Shown one piece after another: positions 36,727 to 60,058 of a DNA stretch of 64,000 bases; position 1 is the first letter of the stretch; the number at the start of each line of letters is the position of its first letter. The DNA comes from Selaginella moellendorffii (Eukaryota; Plantae; Lycopodiophyta). The stretch is from contig NW_003314309.1 of the NCBI RefSeq assembly GCF_000143415.4, positions 322,300 to 386,299 on the forward strand, written 5' to 3'. The translations under genes were made by a program, and so were the position numbers. The notes under the pieces are model-generated. The model did no database searches. It saw only the letters and a program-made list of their open reading frames with translations, and was not told the origin of the DNA.

Positions 36727-37870
36727 ATGGAGTTGATGGCTGCTTTCAGACTAGCACTCGGCATCATAGGTTTGCCCTGCATAATCACCAGCCTCTAATG
36801 TCTGATTAAAATGCTGTTTTCTTTTTCCAGGAAACATTACAGAAATTTCCATTTGCCTGGCTCCAATGTAAGCAACATATAAACTCAAGTTTTTTTGTTT
36901 GTTGTTTTGGTGAAACGTTTCAAATTTTAGGCCAACGTTCTGGAGGATCTACAAGAACAAATCAGTAGAAAAATTCTCCTGGTTACCATATGCAACAGGT
37001 CTCTTGTATGCAGCATACTGGGGATGCTATGCATTGCCATTCATCACAGAGCACAACATGCTCCTCTTCACAGTCTCAGTTGCACAAGCGGTTCTGGAGC
37101 TCATTTACCTCATCATCTTCCTAGTTTACTCCTCACCAAAACAAAGGGTGCATATCTGAAAGAGTTTCATACCAGAAGGCACTTATATAATATTTCGGTT
37201 TCTATGCAGGCAAGTGTTGCAGGAACAATTTTCGGTGTAGCAGCATCAGTTGCTGCAACAATTGCAGTAGCCAAGTCAGCAATGCACAAGCGACCAGAGA
37301 GGTGCATGTTTGCAGGGCTTCCAGCTGCCATTGTCACAGTTGCTATGTATGCATCTCCTCTCACTGTCATGGTAAGAAGATTTCTTTATTTCTTTCCTCA
37401 CTGATCAAGAATTCTTTGTAACAGAGGCTGGTAATCAAGACCAAGAGTGTGGAGTACATGCCATTCTTGCTCTCCTTCTCAATCTTTGTCAATTCGGTTG
37501 CCTGGACAATCTATGGTGTTTTACAGCTTGACTACTTCATACTGGTAAACTTTCCTCTCCTCATTCTATGTGTTTTCTGTTTTTCCTGATAATATTTTTC
37601 TTCTTCTTCTCCATCCAGATTTCAGAAGGACTGGGTGCCATCCTTGGTACTAGTCAGCTTGTTCTATATGCTCTGTATAGACCAAGAAAGGACACCAGCA
37701 AAGAAGAGATTAAACTTCGGGAATTACGAGATGATCCCAAGAAAGCAGCACATATTACATTTCAGGAATTACAAGACGATGCCAAGAAAGTAGCACATAT
37801 TACACTGGATGTTGACAAACTGCAAGGCCTGAACAAGAACACAGAAGAGGTCTCTCAATGCAAAAATTGA
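36727..37870 (+). CDS. SWEET/MtN3 transporter A (non-canonical pocket), 6 exons
   Basis: LGIIGNITEISICLAPMPTFWRIYKNKSVEKFSWLPY, MYASPLTVMRLVIKTKSVEYMPF and LGTSQLVLY, with the canonical SWEET exon layout and a TATA box at ~36633. Confidence 0.92.
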
Positions 37871-37920
37871 GGCTCCAAATTATATCTCCCAGCAAAAGAA
37901 TATGGTCCTTTTATACTTTC

Positions 37921-40001
37921 TCACTTCTTTGCCTTGCCACAAAGCAAGACGTTTTGAGGAATTGGCTCGTTGATTCCATTGGGATCTTCCGGATTGACCA
38001 CCCGCATGTAAAACTCTTGTCCAAGGTACTGCCTTATAACATTTTGAGACCGCACATTCCACATCCCAACGTTGTCCAGCTCCAGCATAATGGCAGTCCA
38101 CGACTTGGCATACACCTTCAAATCATAGATTAAAACATCTTAGCTTGCGAATTAATAGACTAACAGCTTACTTGAACTGTGGATCTGGCAACCGCATCCA
38201 CAAGATTGTAAGTTAGCCTGCTTGAAGTTGTCCAGTCCCCTGGTCCCATACTGAGAAAACATAGTCCAGCAATTAATACAAATACCGAAGTAACAAAAAG
38301 ATAAAAACGATGAAAACACTTACCCAACCACAAAAAAAGCATAGCCATCGATATGCCAGGACTGTACTGGATTCTCGTTGTTCTGGAATATGATCTCCAT
38401 GAACGACCTGTACGTGCCAGATAGCACCGACGCACCATTATAGGGACTCCGCCCGTCGGGATACTCGGGGATCGAGTTGGGAGAAAAGACTCCTCCGATC
38501 TTATAGAAATCTGCCAGCTTCAATGGTGTTCCTGGATGCATGTAGGAGATGCCATTCACAGCAAAGCGCTGTTTTCCATTGATGGCCGGGGCCGAGTTTG
38601 CGAGCTTTACTGTTTTGGAGATGTTGATAAGTCCATAGTGGAAAGACCCCTGTGGATTTGGCCTCGCGGCGCCAGCGGTCAGATTCCACCTGCAAAATGG
38701 AAGTGAGGCATGGGAAATGCAGCTTCATTTTTTATACCAGGATTACTTACTTGATGGTACGTGCTTGATTAAACGAGAAGTTTATATCACCCACAGCAGG
38801 CCCCGCTGGAAAGGGACCAGAGACACGCGAGAAAGAGTTTGTGTAGTGAAGAACTGCAACACCCGTGATCTCTGGGAGACTGAACCTGGAAGTTGCCATA
38901 ATATAAAAGTCTTTGGGACTCTGATCAGTGGTGATGAGAACCGAGTAGGACTGGCCAACGTGAACGTCAAGTGAGTCGTAGAGTGCTTGAGCCGTGTAGG
39001 ATCCCTCCGTCTCCACCAGCTTCATTTTGTGGCCTTGAATTCTAAAGTTGAGCGAGGAAACGCTCCCCACGTTGGAGATTCTAAGCCTGTAAGTTTTGCC
39101 TGCACCATTCTAGCAGTGTTAGTCTATCTGTTAGCTTATAAACGATAAAGCTTTGTGTACCTGGTTGTACTGTCAAGGTTGTTCCATAAGGACCACGTCC
39201 ATTGATAAGCACGCCATCCCCCTTCCCAATCATCTCCCCTCGATCCAACGCAGCTCTTAATTGCTGGAAGAACGAAACATGTTTAACATAAAGGAGAAAC
39301 ACAAAAAAGCTACGAACTTACTGTGTGATTAAACTTGTACCAGTCGCCGATAAGAACTGTTAGCTCCGCAAAAGGAGGAGCAAATGGAACAGGAATCACT
39401 GCTCGGTTGTGGATGCGAATCCCTCCGTAGCCACCAGCCGCTCGTTGAAGAAGCAAGGATGGAAAGTAGGAAAACGTTCCAATCTGGTCCTTGGCTTGGA
39501 ACTGGTAAGTCCAATTCTGTCCGGGCATTATTGGGCAGTTCGTTCCAAGCGTTCCATCTTGCCATGAATCTCGCCGCAGTTGCAATCCATTCCTAGAAGA
39601 AGAAAGCAAAAGAAATTCATCAACAAAGTGCCACAACAGGGCATTTGCTGCAAAGATGCGTTTGAGATGTTCCTACCAGGTAAGAAGCAGAGGCTCGTCC
39701 AAACTGTTGCGCAGATTGATAACGACGTTGTTGTTCGTTGTGGTCTCAAGCTCGGGACCCGGAAACTGCCCGTTTATCGCGATTACCTGGACGATCCCCA
39801 AGAACATCACAAAAAAGAAGACGATAATCTCATTGCCTGCAAAGATCTCGAAACACTTACCCGCTGGTTCACTCCCAGAGGCGATGTGCTGACGAAAGAA
39901 ACATTCCAGTCGTGGAACTGGTACGGATCTCCCGCTCTGGCGACTAGTACCAAGGCGCATGCGACCAATGCAGCATTGAGGAGCAATGCCGGTCGCGCCA
40001 T
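37921..40001 (-). CDS. SKU5-similar (SKS) multicopper-oxidase-like protein, no GPI tail
   Basis: Signal peptide, AGDPY, INGQFPGP, SWQDGTLGTNCPI, KDQIGTFSYFPS, RPNPQGSFHYG, SWHIDGYAFFVVG and LDNVGMWNVRS. Confidence 0.92.
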
Positions 40002-40725
40002 AGCTGGAAATCGCCCCCACAAGCCGCGATCGATCGAAATATCAGCAAAGAATCGAAGAATCGATGGATTTCGGCGCAAGAAGGACGAATCTAGCTAGAG
40101 CCGGGGTGGAGAGGCCATGGCCGCGAGCAAGAGGCGTCGTCGAGAGGGAGGAGGCTGGAGCAATGGAGAGAACCCTGAGAGCGACGGCGTTAACGAGAAA
40201 TGAATATGCCACCGATTTGAGGCATGGATACCTTTTTCCTCGCGGTGGGCACGAGGAAAAAGCTCTGGATGCCCAGCCGCGATTAATCATTACTAATGGG
40301 GATTATCGGACTAAGAGGAAAGAGACCAGCCTCCATTCATGTGAATGGCGGGACAAAAAAGCTGACCTGGCGTGCTAGCTGTCCTAGTCAGCTTTAGTAG
40401 TCAACGGCCCCGATCTCCCCTGATCGCACGGCGCGCCGCAAATGCCAAAGCATATTCGTTTTCCCGCCGTTTGGAGGCCAGCACAGCTGGAAAAGGACCC
40501 CCGCCCCCGAAAAGAATGTTTCTTGGTTCTTTCCTTCACCGCGTCACGATAATGAGATCGGCGATCATGCTTTTTAACTCAAACTAATCCTGGCTTCCAA
40601 CTGTTAGAGAATCTACAAAACAATAAGCAAAAACATACCTCGCGTCGTAAGTTGCCGAGAGAACATCGTGTGATCTCGCAAGTTTGTCAGTTGAGTTGCT
40701 TGAGATCTCGCAACCCAAGGTTAAG

Positions 40726-45040
<4,315 letters not shown>

Positions 45041-45559
45041 GAGTTCGTAGCATGTTGAAGCTCAAGCCGAGGAAAATCACTGCCCTGAAAACCCTAGCTG
45101 ATCTCAGCCCAAATCTTACTCCATAGAAGCTGCACTGCTCACCCCTTGATTTCGAGCGGCTGCTACATTCGATCCGCGCAGTCTCTCAGCCCAGCGCCTT
45201 CCTCCCGACGAGCAATGCAGCTGAAACCCAGGGCTTCCCAAAAATGGAGGGAAAAAAGTGCGAAGAGCCCTAAATTTCAAAAGCCAGTAGTGGCGTACAA
45301 ATTCTTAGTAAATTCTCCACCGTCCAAAGACTGAGCACTACGGATTATATAAACCTGTAAAGGAATAGATTCGACGATCACGAGAGAGGGAGTTTATCTT
45401 GCTACCCAAGACAATATTCGTTTTGCTCGCAGGATTTCTTTCTTTAATTTTGGGCAAAGTGAGGGACTCCGCGCAAGAATAAATAAGTGGTGTTAAAGCC
45501 AAATGTTCTCGCGAAATTGAAAGAGCTAACGCTGCTCAGGAGGCTCGAAAATCATAGCA

Positions 45560-46829
45560 ATGGATCAAATATTACACGCGAAATTCATCATTGGAATCAT
45601 AGGTGAAGTTCTTGATCCAGAAATCCAGCCAGAGCTTTCTCTTTCTCCTCTCTGTCTCTCTCTCTGTTGCTCAAATTCTTTTGTGCAATCAACCCATGTT
45701 TGATCGTCACTGGTGCGTGGCATTCTTCCAAAGTGATTGAATCTTTCCTCGATCATTCTTCTCCGCGATTTCATCAGCAATCTCTTTGCTTGTAGTCGCA
45801 AAAAAGACGAGAAATCTCTCGCGGATTTCTTAACTAACGGAAGCTAACGCCTTCAAGTTGCCTTGTGGTGCCAGGAAATATTGCTACCATATCAACCAGC
45901 CTCGCTCCAATGTAAAAAACTCTAAAGAACTCTTCCTTTTTTCAAATCTCTGACAGATTCAAATATGTTTAGCCCAACTTTCTGGCGGATTTGCAAGCGA
46001 AGGTCCACGGACGATTTCTCGTTTCTTCCATACTTAATGTCATTTACATGCAATCTTTTGTGGGGATGGTACGCTCTCCCCTTCATCACCTCCAACAATT
46101 TCGAGCTTCTAACCATTTGCATCGCACAAGTCTCACTCCAAACAATCTATATCCTCCTCTACTTTACATTCACGGGCCGCTACCAAAAGGCAAGCCCTCT
46201 GGAAAGAGTTTTTCAATCTCAAACTTTTGGCAACTTTGTTTTCCAGATCAAGCTCTTTCTCTCGATGCTCTTCGTGGGCTTTATCTTCGCTGTTGATTCA
46301 GTGGCGTGCCTGAAAATACTTGGCAAGTCTAGAGGACAATTCTTTGCAGGAACAGCCGCCACGATCGCAGCGCTTCTCTGTTTTGCGTCACCACTTTCGA
46401 TAATGGTATGTGCGTGTTAGTATTCCCTCCTCCACTTTCTAATATTCTTTGGACTATATACACTCTTTAACGCTTCGGTTTCTTTTCCCAGGGACTGGTC
46501 ATCAAAACCAAGAGTGTAGAGTATATGCCACTTCTGGTCTCCCTTGCGCTCTTATTCAATTGCGTCACTTGGACGGTTTACGCCCTTTTGGGGAAAGACG
46601 TGTTTCTCACGGTAATCCACACTTGTTTGATGTTTATCTACTGAGTTTTGGTTGCCAGATTGCCGAAGCCATGGGAACTGCATTGGCTGTCGGACAGCTG
46701 ATTTTGTATGCTTGCTACTGCCGTGTCAAAAAGCCACCGGTCCATGTGGAAGAGTCACTTTTTGAGTCGTCTAAGGATCACTCCAAAGTGGAGATTGCTG
46801 TCATAGTTGCACAGCCATCCGAGGATTAG
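45560..46829 (+). CDS. SWEET/MtN3 transporter B (non-canonical pocket), 6 exons, one GC-AG intron
   Basis: MDQILHAKFIIGIIGNIATISTSLAP, PTFWRICKRRSTDDFSFLPY, CFASPLSIMGLVIKTKSVEYMPL and GQLILYACY. Confidence 0.92.
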
Positions 46830-47115: not shown

Positions 47116-48544
<1,429 letters not shown>

Positions 48545-48635
48545 TAGAAAACAAGTTTTTCCTATATAATGTATTTTACCTTTAAACTCCTCAGGCATTT
48601 CTAATAGTTAGTCCATTTTCGCTGCTACCAGGGGA

Positions 48636-49730: not shown

Positions 49731-50354
49731 CGTTAAAAGCTTTTCCATAGTTCTCAGTCTTTCACACTTGAGGCAAGGGAAATGCATTTTGGCGAATTAG
49801 AGCAGCCCTGAAAATACCAAAGAAAGCATAAGTTGACAAAGCCATTTGAAGCACAGGAGGCAATCTAACTTTAGTAACAATATTTAGAACATTATTTAGA
49901 AAAGGGATTTCATGTTCAATCACACTCAAGACCACAAAAGGAAGAGTCTCATAACAATTGTTATATAGAAGGGTAAAATGTTGGTAAGCATGGGAGCCAA
50001 GTGTGGGTAGTAATAACATTTTTCTAGCTATTCCCATACTCTAAGTTGAACTCTTATGTATTATTAGTGTTATAATAAAAACTCATTCCCTGATTCTTGA
50101 TAGTTTAGATTGTCAATCTAAAAAATGAGACTTTAGAATTACAATAGTGTTAGAACCACTTGTGTTATAATTATATAGAATAACTAGAATACTGTCATTC
50201 TTAAAAATGTAAGATTTTACACTTTACTCATAATGAACTAAACTTTCAAAGAAACTAAGACATTATATGTACAATAACTCTTATGGTGTCCTTAGAACAA
50301 AGTATGCTAACTATAATCAATATCATTTAACCATATATTCATTAATTTTGGTGA

Positions 50355-50461
50355 ATTCACAATCTCAAAATAAGATTCTATTTTAGAATATTCTTAAGAA
50401 TGAGATTAAATTTAATTCTTAAGAATATTATAAAATAAAATCTGATTTTGAGAATGTGGAT
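50355..50461. repeat. AT-rich hairpin (~47-bp arms)
   Basis: ATTCACAATCTCAAAATAAGATTCTATTTTAGAATATTCTTAAGAAT pairs with ATTCTTAAGAATATTATAAAATAAAATCTGATTTTGAGAATGTGGAT. Confidence 0.8.
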
Positions 50462-52349
50462 CTTATTTTGAGATAAGTTACATTTTTGTTTTTGGTTTTA
50501 AATTTTTAGCTGTATACCTTTCTTCACCAACTCAAAAAACCATTTTCTTATATTTTATGGTAATGAAAACTGTAACTATGAGTAGTGTTTTTTATAAATG
50601 TTTTTAAGTCTTGTAAAATCTTAATTTTTTTTATATGGTATTTTTGTGTAAAGATGTTTTATATCCTGAAAAATAGATGGATTTGCAGATATATATATGA
50701 TATACCATTTATCACTTTTTTCATATATACTCTTTTGAAAACTATATTTTAATTTTTCACATAAAAAATCTTTTGCATCTTTATCCACAATTAACATTCA
50801 CATCATGTAATTTTGAAGTTGTTTGAAGATTTTATCTTCTTTAGAAAGTTCAAATGGTGATAAACATAAAGAATGAATTATTTTGTTCGTACCTCCTTGA
50901 TATAAAGTATTATTTATTTATTATATCTCTATATTAGGCATTTTTATATTTTATCCTCCATTTGAATTAAATAAGTTTTATCTTCAATAAAAATCTCCTT
51001 TGTATTGTTCTACGTTTCAACCTTTTCTTTATTTTTCAACTTGAGGAACATCATGTCCTTCAACTTGGGATACAACACCTTCTTCATTTTAATATATCAT
51101 TGTGAATAAGTTTGAATATTTTTATGCATAAGTAAAATAATTTAGTAATGGTAATAACTATTGTTTAGAAGTGAAAGACCAAACTCTAAGTTGTAAAAAA
51201 TCTTTTTTAAATAATCCAAGATATTTTAGAAATAAGATAGTATATAGCCTTATAGCAAAATATTGATTATAATGTTTAATTATCATATTATTATTTTGCA
51301 CTCCAACTTCAACTTCATTGATCTTTGATACTAATAATCCATTAATTTCAAGTAATGTAAGCCATATTTTCTCTTTAGAATTAGCATTAAAAATTAATGG
51401 CTGTTGATATTAAAGTTTTCTAATATCCTTATCAGGAGTCTCCAAAATAATATCAATATTATTTGTACCTGTATTTGTAACTATAAATTAAAATATATAT
51501 AGAAAAAATATTATACTTACTTTGTAAAGGAGATTGTGGAGGTGTAATAAAATTATAATGTTTGATTCTGAAATATTCATGTTTTACAAGACCTTACATA
51601 AAAAATCTTAAAATATTTTTCATCTCATAATTTATATATCTTTCTTTAAATTTTGTGATTTATACTAATTTCATAAAACAAGAGAATAATGGTTAAAGAA
51701 TTCATTTGTAACTTAGACATAAACATAAAGAATGATTTACTAAAAAATAATTTTTACCCTCAAAAGTTGATTCTAATTAGTGAAACAGCTAACCAAAATT
51801 ATCTTCATTCTCTGTTTCTTTAAGAACTTCAAAATTTATATTGTTTATAATTAGAGAATCTGTTATAAAATATTTATAAATATATATGTAAATAATAATG
51901 TTTTAATTTTAATTACATATGTATGTTTATTTTTCTCCTTTCTTATTATCATCCTTTAAAGTATTATTTGTAACACCTAAAATATAGGTAAATAATAATA
52001 TTACATAAAACCTTATAAATAAATTACTTACTTTTTTCTTTGTTTTTATCATACAAGATTGTATTATTTGAAGTGGTATATTTATCACCTTAAAATTATA
52101 AGTAATAACAAAATTATAGTTATTTATTAAAAATTACTCACTTACATTTTCATCTTCATTATGAGAAGTATCATTTAAAGTATTATACTCATCATCTGGA
52201 AACTAATAAATGATGATGTTATAAATTTTTATATAAATATATTACTTACTTCTTTCTTAACCATCATTAAATATTTAATCTTTTGAAGTGTTATGCTTAT
52301 CACATAAAATTTATTAACAATAAACTTATTATATAGTTATTTATTTTAT

Positions 52350-52785
52350 AAATCTCTCATAATGATTATAACAAGCACTTACCTTTATCATGTACTCTCT
52401 TTTATCATTTTTCAGATACTTTATATATTGAAGAGGTAGGCTCATGATAATCTATACCTAAAGTCTTTCATAAAACTCCCATAATAATTATAAGAAGCAC
52501 ATACCTTGATCATGTACTCTCTTTTGTCATTTTTCAAATACCTTATTTGCTAAAGAGGTCATGATGATCTGTACTTAAAATATTTTATAAACCTCTCATA
52601 ATAATTATAAGAAGTGCTTATGTTTATCATATGCCCTCTTTTTTGTTTTTTAAATACCTCATTTGCTATATAGGTAAGCTTGTGATCTGTACTCAAAATA
52701 TATTATAACCTTTCATAATAATTATAAAAGATACTTACTTTTATCATGCACCCTTTTTTGTTACTTTTCAAATACCTCATCTATT
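52350..52785 (-). repeat. ~118-bp tandem repeat (4 units) resembling duplicated exon-intron modules
   Basis: CTCATAATAATTATAAGAAGCACTTACCTTTATCATGTACTCTCTTTT recurs at ~52356, 52477, 52595 and 52712. Confidence 0.75.
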
Positions 52786-52799
52786 ATATCTTGTGGCAT

Positions 52800-55540
52800 T
52801 TTATGCTTCAAGCTTCCACTAAAAAGTTTTTTAGATTTTTTACTTCCCTTTTTTCTTTTCTCTTAGCCTTTTGTTTTGGTTCTCTTTAGCCTTAAAATTG
52901 CCACTTCAGAGCTTAGAGATGTCAGTCTTTGCTTGCCTATTGCCTTAGATGAAGTTGCTCACCCTTCCTCTAATTTTTGCTTTTGTGGAACTATCTTTGA
53001 AAGGAGAGGACAAAGGTCAAATTTCTTAAGCATCTCAACCTTTTTTGCAAGTGTTCCTCCAGACTTTATATGACCCTAATGCTTTAATAACTCAAGAGCA
53101 TTCCAACTTGCAGAATTATATGGCACCCATACTCCAAGACACAAGCCTCTTTAGGAACTTTTTGAATTATATACTGAGCAACTCCTAATTGCAAGGTTCC
53201 ACTAAAATGCCATATTCCTTTCCAATAATTTAGAATGCTAAAATTCTTTTTTCCAAAAATAAGATCCTCATCTTCTGGTGTCAAGTTGTCATGGATGTCT
53301 TATTTGGTATGAAAACTAACCACCTGCATCTTCCTTATCAAAAAAACATTTGATGTTGAATTTATCTTTAACCCTAGCCTTTTGAAGGAAGTTGAATACC
53401 AACAATGTTTGTTTGTGTCCATAGAAAATCAAAATCTTGCAACTATAATTCTTGTTTCTGACAACTCCAAAAAGACATTTTAATTATTCTTTCACCTTTA
53501 AATCTGCCAATTCTTGATCTCCTCTTAAATCCATAACTAGTAATTTAATTATGTTATCTTTTTGTGCTAACCATATAGGCCAAGCATTCTGATCACTATC
53601 TATGTTGAAAACTCTATATGGATTAGCCTTACTTTGAAGTGCTAAAAAAACTCAAGCTAGAAAGGGTGGTTTTTTTCTAGCTTGATTCATAAGAGCTTTT
53701 ATATAAACCTTATCATCTAAAATCAAAGATCAAAATCCTCATTTGAAATATTCATATTCTACATAAAGGATTCTTTGCTAGTGTTTGTGGTTATACCCTT
53801 CAGCTACTTTATAACACAAAACTTGATCATCTCACTGGTCAAATTCATCCATTCCCAAAGTTTTGACCCCAACTTAAAACCTTTGTTTGATCTTTACTTA
53901 CCACTTTTTTGATTGAACATTTGTCCATGAGAATCTCTTGGCCTAAGAGATTACAAACATCTTTAAAAAGATTCATTGTCCAAGAAATAATTTGCTGCAT
54001 CTTCTTTGTTATCTTAAGAGAAAGTGTATCTTCTTCTCCCTTATGAACAACTTTGATCCAAGTATTGAAAATTTCTTTTGAGCTTCTCAAGAGGCAGTGG
54101 ATGTTTATAGAGTCAGTAACCCCAAATATCATGTTAACCACATTTTCAAAGTTCTATAATAAATTATAAAATTAGTATAATAATATGTTTATACCTTCTA
54201 TTCTCCACAATGAGCTTCTCTTATAGATTTTTCTTAGCATTCACCCATGCCTTTGTGGTAGGGTCTCTACTAGTTTTCTAGTATAACTGTATAGTAGTGG
54301 ACATACCTATTTGAATATTTTGGGATATTCTACCATCTAATGGTTTTTTTAGATTAATATTTTTGAAAGGTGGGATATTCAATATTTAGTGTTAATTATC
54401 AACAAGAAAACATTATTCATGCATTTATAATTTATAAATATGTTTATAATTCATAAAAGTTTCTAAAAACCTCCTAGTACATCTGAGTTATCCAGCTAAT
54501 GGTTGATATTCTATAAGATTAATCTTGTGTTCATAAATTATAATTAATTTTAGAAATATAAACTTCTAATTAATCAACTGAAATACTAAACACTACTAGT
54601 TCTTTTGGTTTGCATGAGCAAACCTAGTGGGACTGGGGTGGAAATAGATATATCTTAAATATACTAGAATATTCTTTCTTAGACTGTCAGCATTCATTTA
54701 TATTAATATTTTTTAAAAAACTTATAAACATATTTATAATTTATAAACATAAGATTAAGTTTAAAGTTTCCCAATTAAAGGAATTGCTGAAACTCTAAGA
54801 AAAATAAATTTAAACCAATGCTAGAAAATATATGATAAAGAATCATTATTGTATTTCATAATGATACAAGTTTAATAAAATTCATTATGGTCTTTTTTTA
54901 ATTACAGTTATTTTTACTGTATTAAATAAATTTATCTTGCCAATATCTTTAATTTTTATTACACTTTTTGTCACAATATTAATACCAGTATTTGAAGCCC
55001 AAATTTGATTATGCATGTTATTATAAATAACAAATTTTTTATTTGTTTCTAAAATACAAAAGCAATTAAAACATTTACCTTCTGTTTTACTTTCCCAAAT
55101 TTTGAACCTTAAAAAATTAAAATACCAAATTACAACTTCTTTTCATGGTTAATTTAAAATTTTCATTTGGAGAAACAATAGAATTTTCTGAAAGAAGATA
55201 AGATCCTATATCATTTAAACTTCCACTTACCAGAGATGGTCTATAAAATCCAACAGTCATTTTCATTTGTCTTTCTCTAGTATATTTAACAATATTTTAA
55301 AAGTTTCACCATAAATTATGATTTCAGGTCCTTTAAAACAACAAGTTTTACCTCTTGTATGAGCATAAATAGATACTGTCAATTGTATTTGAGGCACTGA
55401 AGCTCCTCCAAAGCATTCAATAGGGAAAGTTCTTGTACTTTAAAATGAACCATTTGTCTATAAAACAGTTAATTCTTTCACTAATAACACTTATATCACC
55501 ATCAATAAGACTATTATACAATGATTTTACTGTTATTAAA
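52800..55540 (-). pseudogene. Decayed, probably transposon-associated coding remnants
   Basis: Minus-strand ORF fragments 53084-53284, 53845-54141 and ~55100-55530 have many stops and sit in very AT-rich DNA. No diagnostic motif. Confidence 0.35.
54290..54760 (+). mobile_element. Two head-to-tail partial copies of the Helentron/HINE-like element
   Basis: 54290-54597 matches 7325-7600. At 54606 the element restarts with TGGTTTGCATGAGCAAACCTAGTGGGACTGGG. Confidence 0.65.
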
Positions 55541-57074
55541 AATAAGGTGAGAAAAATAGAAGATTAATAACTCTTATATTTAGTTTTGTAAATATAAAAT
55601 AAAGTAAAAAATTTATAGTAAAAATTAATTAAATTTTTTTTTATCTTTATTTTTATATTTTATAAAATTAGAATTTTTAGCTAATAGATATAAAATACAT
55701 ACATATACACACATGTATAGCCAAAACTATATTTGGGATATTAGTCAGTTGTCACTTAGCATTATATAGGCTCATGTGCCACTCCCTTATAGTTCATTAT
55801 ATCTAGAGCATGCTCTTGCTAAAGTTAAACACTAAGAGAACTTATTATGGATTGCATCTTTAGTTTGAGAAAACAAGGGGCTATTCTCTTCCTCATCTTA
55901 GAATTATTCCTCCTTGTCCTTTTTTGCCCTTTTTCATTTCTCCTCATCTTTGATTTGCAAATATTTTTTCCTTACAAGTTTTAGGCAACAGCAATATTGC
56001 TAATCCAAGCTTTATATTGCAAGAGCTTACAATTTTTCATGGTATTTTTTTCACTCATGCACATAAATTAGGAGTTGGACTCCAAATTGTTTCATAAAAT
56101 AAAGGGACTTGGAGTATAGTATTAATTAGGGCAAGGCCTTTGCTTATTTACAAAAATGGATAAACTAAATTGAGTCTTAATTACTATATAATTAGTGTAT
56201 ATAAGGTTATAACAGTAAGTTATATCATTTGAAACTTCTTGTATTACCATGAGAACTGATGGTGTTGTCAACACTAATCATTGGGAGTGGAATGGATCAA
56301 TTGGCAGCTAAGTTACTGGCACTTGTGGAGTCCCTTTGTCCCAGGAGTATGGGAATGTTTGGTCCCCCCAAGATCCTGATGGAGTCTCTTGCAGCCAAGG
56401 TTATGAAACTTAAAGCTCTTATAGAATTATTGAAACAACCATAGCAAAAACAAAACCCAAAGGCATGGCACAAACATTAACTTTAAAGCCATAACTTGGA
56501 ACTAAAGGAAAGTGACTTAAAAAACTATTGTAGTTTATAACACATTGGTGTAACAACTAATACCTATCTTTGCATCCTCTTTCCAATCAACCTCCAACTT
56601 GGGCTCATTACAACTACAAAATATGTCCATACATCTAACAAAAGTTGTGTCTTTTTTTCTTTGGTTATCTTACCATCTTCAATAATCTTTCAAAGCTGGT
56701 TTATATGTAGATTTATAAGGTTGATTAATTCAGCTGGTTCTAATTAAACTCATATACATTTTTATCACAAATTGAAACTCATATAAGTTCTATTCTCACT
56801 CAAGCAACTTTATCCCAAACTACAATTGTAGTGTGGACTTTGCAAAAAGCTAGGGGTAAAGTCGAAGAGATGTGATCTGGAAAGAATGGCATCACATCAA
56901 TCAGCTCCTTAGGCTCCTTAGCTTCAAGACCTCACAATCCACAACACTATTAATTGAGCAAGGGTTGTTGATGCATAAGAGTTCCAAGTCCCTTGCTTGT
57001 TACAGTTGGTTGTGGCATAAAAAAATCAAACATTCAACTAGAAATCACTTGATCTAATTTATATATATGCACGA

Positions 57075-57580
57075 GTGTGAGAAAGACCGGGGGAATTTCT
57101 AGGGATTGAGAGAGCACAATGAGGTACATTTCTTTCCACTTGCTATAAAGCTCTCCCCTCTCATAAATATGATTGCATGACCACTTCATACAGCAAATTG
57201 GTGATCATCTGCAAGATTGTGAATTTCCCTAGATCAACACACTTGTATTTGTCACTACCAAACATAGATCTATAGAGCGTGTTCTTGGAGATTTAGGAAT
57301 AAACTAGATGCATGGATTCGTAACATTTCTCTTCTATCTCAAACCTTAAAGTTATTCTTTCTAGGAATTTTTGAACTTTTTGTGCCATCTTCATGTTAGG
57401 ATGTATCACTAGAGTCAAGATCCTTAGAAACTCATTGCATGCAAGTTGTTTTTCTCCCTAGAGATGTGATAGAACAAGATCCAATATTTTACATCTATTT
57501 CTCTCTTAGTCTTGAGTCTTTTGTTGTGCCATTTGTTTTCTAGGCAAATATTTCATCCTATCTCTCCTTTGGTATCAGAA
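57075..57580 (+). mobile_element. Possible LTR remnant followed by a tRNA-iMet PBS
   Basis: TGGTATCAGA at ~57570 follows ~500 bp of non-coding DNA with TATA-like motifs. No partner LTR is visible. Confidence 0.3.
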
Positions 57581-60058
57581 AATCTCATTCCTACCTCATA
57601 TTAGTGTCACATACAATCATTTTCCCCTATCATATTTTTTTTCTTCTCTCTGTTTGGCTTTTTCATGCTTTATACATGACTCTACATTTCAAACACAACA
57701 ACCATATGCAAGTGACAGCCCAGCACTACATAATGCCTAGGCAACTTGCCATATCATCTAAAGTGCCTTCTCTAGCTGCCAAACTAGCACTACCAATTTC
57801 TTGCCCTCCATCTATGCCTCAATTTTAACGGCTTTTGATACCCTTCAAAAAGTGTTATTTTTCATAAAATGGAAAACTTTGATTAAGCCTTTTAAAAGAA
57901 ATGTTGTGATGAAAAAACAATTTCAAAAAGAAAGGTATTTAATGATATCAACCTTCAAAAGAAAGGCAATGTTGTAAAAAAAATTTAACTTTTGTATGGG
58001 TTTTGAACCTTAGACTTATACAAGTAGCACTAAACTCTCATTTTGGGGTTAAATTCTCATGATACCAATAATAACAGTAGATTGGGAAGGCCCAAAAAAG
58101 ACATCAAACAATCAATTTTGGGTAATGTTATTTCCATTTTAAAAATAATTTTTCTAGGGTATTAGATCAAGCCAAAAAAGGTGGTGGGAGGGGAATGCCA
58201 TAGTTCAAAAAGGATTGGCAATTAGTTTATCTTTGACTTCTTAGAATTAGTGTTTTGGGGGGTTGTGATAGTCCAACACTATAGAATGTGAATGAGGTTT
58301 TAAAAGGCAAAACAATATTAAAACTAAAAGCTTTCAACATGCTAATGTTCTTCTCACTTTTAGCTCTTGATACTATAGATGTAAATTACCAACTTATATT
58401 TAATTTTTGGCAAGAAAAACAAAATAGGTGCATCTTGAACTTTGATTGTACTTAAAGGTTATATCAAATAAAAGCTTGCTTTTGAAACACAAAATATTTT
58501 TTAAATTTTCAAGATGAAAGGTAGATCAAAACTAAAATTTTCAAAAGAAAATAAGGTGTGCCAGGCATGCCTCCATCAAATCGACCTTGCGATGCTCTAG
58601 GAGCATGATATCGACTACCTTCAGATCAAAACAACTCCCACACACAAGCATCTTTCCACCAAGAGCTCCACGAAAAGGGGAGAGGGTTGCCACTCATGAC
58701 TCAATTGCCACCAGTGCTCAACCAACACTCGCCAACACAAGCCTTCCTATGAAGCTACTCCCCACAACCCGACTTGTACTCAACCTTGGCAAATCTACTA
58801 GATGTAGACCACACCAATGGCAACATTGCCTTTCCCTCCAAAGATTCATGCCCACCTTCTTAACCCCTAGCTTAGTGATAGTGGCCAACCTTACTCAACA
58901 TGGATTGCCTACTTGTACAAAGGAGCCATTGGTTTGGTGATTGTGAGGACAAGTAGTAGTGCCCACTCCATGAGCAACATGCCCACCAAGCCAATCCTCC
59001 CCCAAGGCAAGCATATGAGAGAGTGCCATAGCAATCTCTGCCCACCTGATGCTCCTTCATGTAAGCGACTAAATTTTCCATTCTACTTTAGTCACTTAAC
59101 CACACCTCTGACCACTTGGAGGAGTCTCATTCACAACCTCCATAAGTCCAATCCAGGACTTGGGGCTTGCTAGCCCCGAGAATGGCATCCATGCCACTCA
59201 ACATTTGCACTTGGTCCAAGTGCTCCACGTGTCCGATCCCATGACCGACACTCAAAGGTACCACCGACATAGCAGCCCGTTACGCTAAGGCCATGCCCAA
59301 TCACCTTTGCCACACTGGTAGTCCAATACCACTTGCATCACCGTCTTGGCTCTCCAAGACTAGGCAAACCATCCGTGAGTGGTCATCTCAGATCCACTCC
59401 TTAGCATCCTTAGGATGCCCACCGACAAGGGGAATAGCCTTCCCCAATATCCCTCTGTCATTCCCCACTAAGTCCCTTTCTGCCCCTGGCTGTGTTTGCC
59501 AACACTGCCATTGGATCGAGACCCACAGGCTCGACCACTAAGTCCCACGGTCCTCTGGGACTTCCTCACCACACGACTGTGTCCTTGGTCACTACCCCAG
59601 AGGACTGCTCCTCTTCCTTTCCACAGTCTGGGCCTTTGGGACAACATTTCGGAACACCGTGGCCTTACGCAAGCCACCTGGGTACTCTCCTCGCCTTTCG
59701 CCTTTAGGTGCTCTAGCCATGGGCTTAGAGCGAGGTTCCGTTGAGCCACAACAGGTGTCCAAGTAGGTAGTGCCACCCACACTTGGACTGGGAGCATCGG
59801 CCAGTCGATCTCCCGGGGGAACTAGAGCCGGCTCTCGAACACTTCACCAAGCTACCCCACTTGTCGGTCCGTGTTCACTCTAGTCTTGGACTTCCCAATG
59901 GGCAGCTCATCACCCAACACTGGGTCCGGCCTTCCTGGGCCAAACTGGCCTTTCCTGGCCAAACTGGCTCCACTGCAGTCCTCCCCCTACTATACTTTTG
60001 GAGCTCACCAAACCCCCCAGGGTCTGGGAGACGAACGCTTTGGGCTTTCACCCTCTCA

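Follow-up and report, generated by a model that had tools for sequence, protein, structure and literature searches.

Sugar recognition by SWEET carriers depends on a pair of asparagines, one in transmembrane helix 3 (TM3) and one in TM7. The pair is viewed as an invariant core of SWEETs and SemiSWEETs from bacteria to humans, and its mutation kills transport. A stretch of Selaginella moellendorffii DNA (contig NW_003314309.1, positions 322,300 to 386,299 of the forward strand; 64,000 nucleotides, hereafter the window) raises the question of what becomes of a SWEET that has lost both asparagines, given that this is the case for the two SWEET genes that it holds, A and B, and also for a third paralogue, C, that lies outside it. 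Our answer, held at a probability of roughly 60%, is that the three are remodelled clade-I carriers in which the SWEET fold has been kept and the central hydrogen-bonding set of the binding site has been exchanged.

36727..37870, forward strand: SWEET gene A, 276 amino acids, six exons in a hand-built open reading frame (ORF) model, the same as XP_002981282.2 (P0124)
45560..46829, forward strand: SWEET gene B, 248 amino acids by a hand-built six-exon model, Pfam family PF03083
GL377578.1 195905-197176, reverse strand: SWEET gene C, about 52 kb past B on the opposite strand, outside the window

The exchanged residues of the pocket

Residues were mapped by HMMER alignment of A to OsSWEET2b (5ctg, E = 4e-38) and to AtSWEET13 (5xpd), and pocket positions carry the numbering of gene A unless stated. 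The ten pocket residues of AtSWEET13, Ser20 among them, are those listed from Han et al. 2017 in PMC9520054. The residues concerned are the following.

36842..36844, forward strand: A Glu19 in TM1 (GAA), aligned with AtSWEET13 pocket Ser20
37019..37021, forward strand: A Trp57 in TM2, retained pocket aromatic, aligned with AtSWEET13 Trp58 and OsSWEET2b Cys58
37076..37078, forward strand: A Ser76 in TM3 (TCA), in place of the Asn that is N73 in AtSWEET1, N77 in OsSWEET2b and N76 in AtSWEET13
37085..37087, forward strand: A Gln79 (CAA; CAG, synonymous, on the other haplotype), in place of the 96-98% conserved Gly three residues on (+3)
37503..37505, forward strand: A Trp180 in TM6, retained pocket Trp (AtSWEET1 W176), aligned with AtSWEET13 Trp180 and OsSWEET2b Phe181
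37622..37627, forward strand: A Ser195-Glu196 in TM7 (TCA GAA), in place of Pro-Asn (AtSWEET1 P191-N192)
46061..46063, forward strand: B Trp57 in TM2, placed by alignment
46118..46120, forward strand: B Cys76 in TM3 (TGC), in place of the TM3 Asn
46127..46129, forward strand: B Gln79 (CAA), in place of the conserved +3 Gly
46570..46572, forward strand: B pocket Trp of TM6, residue 179 in B's own numbering
46662..46667, forward strand: B Ala-Glu in TM7 (GCC GAA), in place of the TM7 Pro-Asn

The four codons named in the initial annotation of this DNA (37076-78 TCA Ser, 37625-27 GAA Glu, 46118-20 TGC Cys and 46665-67 GAA Glu) were all found as described. Its claim that A and B have lost both asparagines, gained a Gln at +3 and placed a Glu in TM7 holds by the codons and by alignment, in the case of A to solved structures, where Gln79 falls on OsSWEET2b Gly80 and AtSWEET13 Gly79, and Glu196 on OsSWEET2b Asn197 and AtSWEET13 Asn196. 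The Glu that it had noticed in TM1 of A is Glu19, at a known pocket position where canonical SWEETs have Ala, Ser or Gly. Gene C, found in S. moellendorffii by cluster look-up (XP_024530681.1 and shorter models), reads I-I-S-A-I-Q in TM3 (Ser AGT, Gln CAG) and I-S-D-G-L-G in TM7 (Asp GAT). Across A, B and C the pattern is Ser/Cys/Ser at position 76, Gln/Gln/Gln at 79 and Glu/Glu/Asp at 196. Compared with the Trp-Asn signature of a sugar pocket (AtSWEET1 N73, N192 and W176), the trio has both Trp present and both Asn replaced. The ten pocket positions, together with positions 79 and 195, are given below for the trio and for its canonical sister in the same species.

Gene A: 19 E, 22 I, 53 Y, 57 W, 76 S, 79 Q, 142 T, 145 M, 176 N, 180 W, 195 S, 196 E
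Gene B: 19 T, 22 T, 53 C, 57 W, 76 C, 79 Q, 142 A, 145 C, 176 N, 180 W, 195 A, 196 E
Gene C: 19 T, 22 S, 53 C, 57 W, 76 S, 79 Q, 142 S, 145 A, 176 S, 180 W, 195 S, 196 D
Canonical sister (P0133): 19 S, 22 L, 53 N, 57 W, 76 N, 79 G, 142 T, 145 M, 176 N, 180 W, 195 P, 196 N

Three pocket asparagines (53, 76 and 196) are gone from A, B and C, and both Trp are invariant. PMC9520054, again citing Han 2017, relates four size positions, V23/S54/V145/S176 of AtSWEET13 versus L/N/M/N, to di- versus monosaccharide. At these positions A has the large residues Ile, Tyr, Met and Asn, C has the small residues Ser, Cys, Ala and Ser, and B stands between them with three of the four small; disaccharide-type SWEETs have small residues there, as in C and partly in B. 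The table thus indicates that pocket size is diversified within the trio and that the set of Ser/Cys, Gln and acid is constant.

The rarity of this set was assessed on the SWEETs nearest to the trio, collected by word searches of 5.8 billion proteins and by a full HMMER profile search of 1.84 billion cluster representatives, from which the best 150 of 5,148 matches were used. Of the 303 full-length nearest domains listed, 94% have the TM3 Asn, 93% the TM7 Asn and 98% the +3 Gly; both Asn are missing in just two, and none has Gln at +3 or Asp/Glu in place of the TM7 Asn. When partial domains are included (343-369 domains), the values are about 93%, 91% and 97%. The check for the same substitutions elsewhere that had been proposed with the initial annotation found neither a Gln at +3 nor a true acidic residue in place of the TM7 Asn among these other nearest domains listed. 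An apparent TM7 Asp in P0252 was rejected, given that it belongs to the read-through tail of a truncated gene model and not to the TM7 helix. Outside S. moellendorffii, none of the matches listed in the two collections exceeds 50% identity with A, B or C. Surveys count 15 SWEETs in this species (PMC6128921); a full-text literature search found no paper on 'SmSWEET' and none noting an altered pocket.

The top of the profile search was taken by proteins with more than one SWEET domain, P0130 (Nothophytophthora, 825 amino acids, three full domains) and P0129 (Escallonia, 546 amino acids, two), because domain scores add up. The former, from an oomycete, fits the known 'superSWEET' type.

In AtSWEET1, each of the changes N73A, N192A, W176A and P191T abolishes glucose transport (PMC5742349), and SweetTrac1, a sensor based on AtSWEET1, loses its response on mutation of N73 and N192 (PMC10694572). 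Given that the AtSWEET1 mutants lose glucose transport, unchanged glucose transport by the trio seems unlikely without compensation. Such compensation would leave A, B and C as passive hexose or sucrose SWEETs doing the same job, with Gln79 replacing the amide of residue 76 and a mostly protonated Glu/Asp196 replacing the Asn. Asn and Asp are isosteric and a single-base change apart, the Asp (GAT) and the Ser (AGT) of C are each one step from Asn, and a Gln at i+3 would point to much the same side of the helix as residue 76. None of the gating residues and neither Trp has been lost, and the genes stand in clade I beside a canonical SWEET1. Nonetheless, the pair is kept in about 91-94% of the nearest SWEET domains listed, and in AtSWEET1 a single Asn-to-Ala change is enough to abolish transport. 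Moreover, A, B and C depart from the canonical sister at 7-10 of the 12 positions in or beside the pocket, and replacement of the pair together with loss of Asn53 in all three genes is hard to explain in this way. A merely compensated pocket is considered unlikely.

Fold, descent and selection

The loss of the asparagines has not been accompanied by a loss of the fold. An AlphaFold2 model, made for gene A only on a 95-sequence alignment, has a mean predicted local distance difference test score (pLDDT) of 91.8 and seven TM helices in the 3+1+3 arrangement. It superposes on 5ctg_A (OsSWEET2b) with a root-mean-square deviation of 1.5 Å and a TM-score of 0.94, and on 5xpd (AtSWEET13) with 1.6 Å. 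In each of A and B, exon pieces of the two halves exceed the gathering score of PF03083 (MtN3_slv); the family is matched by every exon piece of the two genes that spans conserved helices, and the full-length proteins carry it as well. Together with the aligned Trp180, these results bear out the earlier statement that the fold and the TM6 Trp are kept.

The moving parts of the carrier are also retained. The proline tetrad of AtSWEET1 (P23, P43, P145 and P162) is kept as P26, P46, P149 and P166 in A, B and C, as are the Tyr-Asp outer gate (Y60, D189), the inner-gate residues and both pocket Trp. When the trio was aligned with 92 diverse SWEETs (less than 62% mutual identity), 27 columns were at least 85% conserved. 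All three genes keep 23 of them, including the proline tetrad, Tyr60/Asp189, Gly135, Trp180, Gly199 and Gln206; N76, G79 and N196 (SCS/QQQ/EED) are alone in being changed throughout the trio, and one further column has a Leu-to-Val change in B only.

This conservation bears on the possibility that the three proteins no longer transport, and serve as ligand-blind subunits that regulate canonical SWEETs through hetero-oligomers, or as receptors. The residues essential for sugar transport are gone, the deposited entry of OsSWEET2b describes a homotrimeric complex, and the long C-terminal tail of A is predicted to be helical and contains a repeat. However, the Gln and both Trp are invariant, the acid is conserved, and the hinge prolines and both gates are kept, all of which would be needless for a scaffold, and a role of this kind is held to be improbable.

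The trio resembles clade-I SWEETs (AtSWEET1, OsSWEET2b and SmSWEET1a, XP_002967398.1) in the two MtN3_slv repeats, the 3+1+3 fold and the six-exon structure, and shares with them the proline tetrad, Tyr60/Asp189, Gly135, Gln206 and the TM6 Trp; it is unlike them in the TM3 Asn, the +3 Gly, the TM7 Pro-Asn and Asn53, and its TM1 is more polar. With AtSWEET13, a clade-III carrier of sucrose and gibberellin (5xpd), it has in common the two Trp (Trp58 and Trp180, matching Trp57 and Trp180) and an Ala where AtSWEET1 has Gly58. AtSWEET13, however, keeps Asn76 and Asn196 and carries the non-sugar gibberellin with a standard pocket, and the trio is not clade III by descent. In a SWEET1-like clade-I group of Solanaceae (P0004-P0014, P0028, P0054 and P0107) the TM7 Pro-Asn has become Ser-Thr; unlike the trio, this group retains Asn in TM3 and Gly at +3, and its Thr is not an acid. 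According to Ho et al. 2019 (PMC6598072), only three of ten tomato clade-I SWEETs restored glucose uptake to yeast; the primer-derived N-terminus of SlSWEET1a, MGVVHT, had no match among the retrieved sequences.

The initial annotation had foreseen a lineage-specific clade, and the tree agrees with it. In an IQ-TREE analysis (LG+C20+F+G4, 95 rows; bootstrap not fully converged, so that deeper values are rough), A, B and C are monophyletic with ultrafast bootstrap 100 and Shimodaira-Hasegawa-like approximate likelihood ratio (SH-aLRT) support of 98, in the topology A,(B,C). Their sister is the canonical SmSWEET1a (97/72), and the four stand inside a group of SWEET1/2-type sequences of clade I (99/81). 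The sister keeps Asn/Gly/Asn and already has Trp at position 57, so that the pocket swap falls on the stem branch of the trio, of length 0.44, and later than the split of lycophytes and seed plants. The trio would thus be a lycophyte-specific offshoot of clade I, born by duplication of a canonical Selaginella gene of SWEET1 type. The codons are consistent with stepwise change, subsequently maintained, along a path in TM3 from Asn AAT through Ser AGT (C) to Cys TGC (B), with the TCA of A further along, and along one in TM7 from Asn AAT through Asp GAT (C) to Glu GAA (A and B).

Columns that are invariant in the trio are strongly enriched among the columns conserved in the family (Mann-Whitney p = 1e-13). 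The ten AtSWEET13 pocket positions, in turn, hold an excess of the changes common to the trio (Fisher p = 0.004, over columns with a conservation of at least 50-60%), and the remaining shared changes mostly adjoin pocket positions (23, 54, 79 and 195). At 13 of the 14 shared-change positions the canonical Selaginella sister has the ancestral residue. The mutual identity of A, B and C is 41-48%. Pairwise non-synonymous divergence (dN) among them is 0.44-0.54 and synonymous divergence (dS) is saturated or undefined, so that it can only be said that dN is well below dS. These values indicate old duplications, with protein change constrained since then. Between the haplotypes, A and B together have 8 synonymous and 9 non-synonymous changes, against a neutral expectation of about 4 and 13 (binomial p = 0.03), and the non-synonymous ones are located in loops, TM4 and C-terminal tails.

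A decay of redundant tandem copies into pseudogenes under relaxed selection would be in line with the proximity of the duplicates, with the non-canonical GC-AG intron and inconsistent database models of B, and with a stop codon that ends one allele of A three residues early. This explanation is largely refuted already and is given very little credence: the ORFs of all three genes are intact on both haplotypes, the great majority of family-conserved columns are kept, dN is far below the saturated dS, and A is expressed and correctly spliced. The earlier judgement that the changes were selected and not decayed is upheld by these same results, by the confinement of the shared losses to N76, G79 and N196, and by the enrichment at the pocket. 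Taken together, the evidence points to a functional protein with a rebuilt binding site rather than to a decaying copy, and the sequence comparisons indicate that the new pocket set is under purifying selection during the divergence of the trio.

Gene models and neighbourhood

Gene A exons, forward strand: 36727-36769, 36831-36867, 36931-37147, 37210-37371, 37425-37544, 37619-37870
Gene B exons, forward strand: 45560-45602, 45875-45911, 45973-46189, 46247-46405, 46492-46611, 46659-46829
46190..46246, forward strand: gene B intron 3, 57 nucleotides, GC-AG, in frame and free of stops, placed as intron 3 of A and C

The six-exon models give intact ORFs for A and B. The exon sizes of B parallel those of A and of C, which has six exons of 37, 37, 217, 159, 120 and 321 nucleotides in a model that gives 296 amino acids, with a long Pro-rich C-terminal tail. 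The intact splicing claimed earlier for A and B was confirmed for A. All five of its GT-AG introns are absent from spliced transcript contigs of independent public runs (X2 and X10; word depth 53-86), and the fact that they are skipped at the predicted borders means that A is transcribed and spliced as modelled. For B, splicing is deduced from the gene model, intron 3 being GC-AG and in frame.

The deposited records are less uniform. B is covered piecewise by four models (P0001, P0002, P0127 and P0128) that differ on intron 3, which is removed in P0001 and kept in P0002 (XP_024530680.1). Their proteins have 143, 224, 228 and 267 amino acids, none of them equal to the 248-amino-acid model that parallels A and C. 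An in-frame piece of B matches SELMODRAFT_146597. Every deposited model of C either retains introns or is truncated. XP_002981282.2 lies on a scaffold of 1.46 Mb; the other haplotype is GL377578.1, on which A is at about 133.9 kb, B at about 142.7 kb and C at 195.9-197.2 kb.

The C-terminal tail of A contains a tandem repeat of 13 amino acids, ELRDDPKKAAHIT and ELQDDAKKVAHIT, at 37721-37759 and 37766-37804; this region is helical by prediction and has lower pLDDT. A change of TGC to TGA at 37861 makes the protein of the other haplotype shorter by three residues. The contigs of A (X2 and X10) extend more than 1 kb beyond 38000 and may fuse with the transcript of a convergent oxidase gene in unstranded assemblies.

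On GL377578.1, the interval between A and B holds a multicopper oxidase and a RecQ helicase, both on the other strand, and the next gene after B is a tubulin. The corresponding features of the window, positioned by homology, are as follows.

About 37930-45060, reverse strand: three-domain multicopper oxidase (convergent with A) and RecQ-type helicase
About 47130-48560, forward strand: tubulin, just 3' of B

Positions 50001-58000 of the window are very rich in A and T, with a G+C content of 22-35% compared with about 47% elsewhere, and the identity of the haplotypes falls from 97.8% to 88-92% from about 48.9 kb onward.

Possible substrates and working of the carriers

Under the preferred reading of remodelled clade-I carriers, alternating-access carriage of the SWEET type would be retained. 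With the TM3 Asn turned into Ser/Cys, a new Gln one helix turn on, the TM7 Pro-Asn turned into Ser/Ala-Glu/Asp, and Asn53 of TM2 lost, the ligand would lie between the two Trp rings, gripped by a carboxylate and the Gln amide instead of the Asn pair. Such a grip would mean a changed class of substrate or a changed coupling. The trio therefore probably carries something other than the usual glucose or sucrose, or carries it differently. The genes are deposited as 'bidirectional sugar transporter SWEET1/1a/1b' in database records, a label that probably misdescribes what the trio does.

If the carriers are remodelled in this manner, an amine, a cationic solute or a strong hydrogen-bond donor, and/or protonation-dependent transport, is a tentative candidate that falls somewhat short of even odds. 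A neutral sugar or polyol with altered selectivity, for which Gln and Glu/Asp would re-create the hydrogen bonds, is a possibility put at about one in three. Given that the size positions differ among A, B and C, their ligands may differ in size and share one chemical handle.

The initial annotation had gone further and proposed proton coupling or a substrate that is a cation or an amine, such as an amino sugar, a polyamine, an alkaloid or a metal; a basic amino acid would be a further candidate of this kind. An acidic residue (Glu/Glu/Asp) is conserved in the middle of the pathway, no new basic partner for it is seen in the helices, A has a second Glu (Glu19) at a pocket position, and the two retained Trp could make a cation-pi box. 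Cystinosin and PQLC2 share the seven-helix 3+1+3 fold, with a Foldseek E of about 1e-3, a TM-score of about 0.5-0.6 and about 13-14% identity to A. In cystinosin, Asp305 of the binding site contacts the amino group of the ligand and has been proposed as the proton site (PMC9385667), and PQLC2 exports cationic amino acids. However, the PQ-motif Gln and the Lys/Asp network, the charged residues of cystinosin coupling, are absent from the trio, and the likeness is one of analogy for the role of a carboxylate, not of membership. Moreover, no SWEET is known to couple transport to ions or to move a cation, and a carboxylate is a common hydrogen-bond partner of sugar hydroxyls. As it was put forward, this proposal is plausible but held to be less likely than not. 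The same holds for its strongest form, in which the trio would be the first natural SWEET-fold carriers with a charged site, the Glu/Asp between the Trp rings binding an amine, a cationic metabolite or a proton in transport linked to cations or protons, with paralogues tuned in size.

Membership of the PQ-loop carriers themselves was rejected: the PQ-loop Pfam match is weak and below the cutoff (19.3 versus 22 bits), the fold match has an E of only about 1e-3 at that low identity, and no Gln follows the hinge prolines in the sequences of the trio.

Several points weigh against the preferred reading of a rebuilt site. Carboxylates are also found in ordinary neutral-sugar sites, and an acid alone is no sign of a cationic ligand. 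Gln79 and Glu196 would be turned to the cavity judging from helix periodicity and from their neighbours N76/N196, and the directions of their side chains and of that of Glu19 are deduced from alignment with the solved structures. With 17 changes, the allelic test carries little weight. Finally, the word and profile searches found no orthologue with the signature in another species among the matches listed, which is weak evidence, and for this reason the case for conservation is drawn from a single species, with its three paralogues and two haplotypes.

So far the finding concerns one lycophyte. In it, a natural clade has swapped exactly the Asn core and the neighbouring Gly, with gates and hinges kept and under selection. 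The trio thereby offers a natural test of which other substrates the SWEET scaffold can move and of whether ion coupling is possible in it, and its three defined swaps (N to S/C, G to Q and N to E/D) may be used in both directions.

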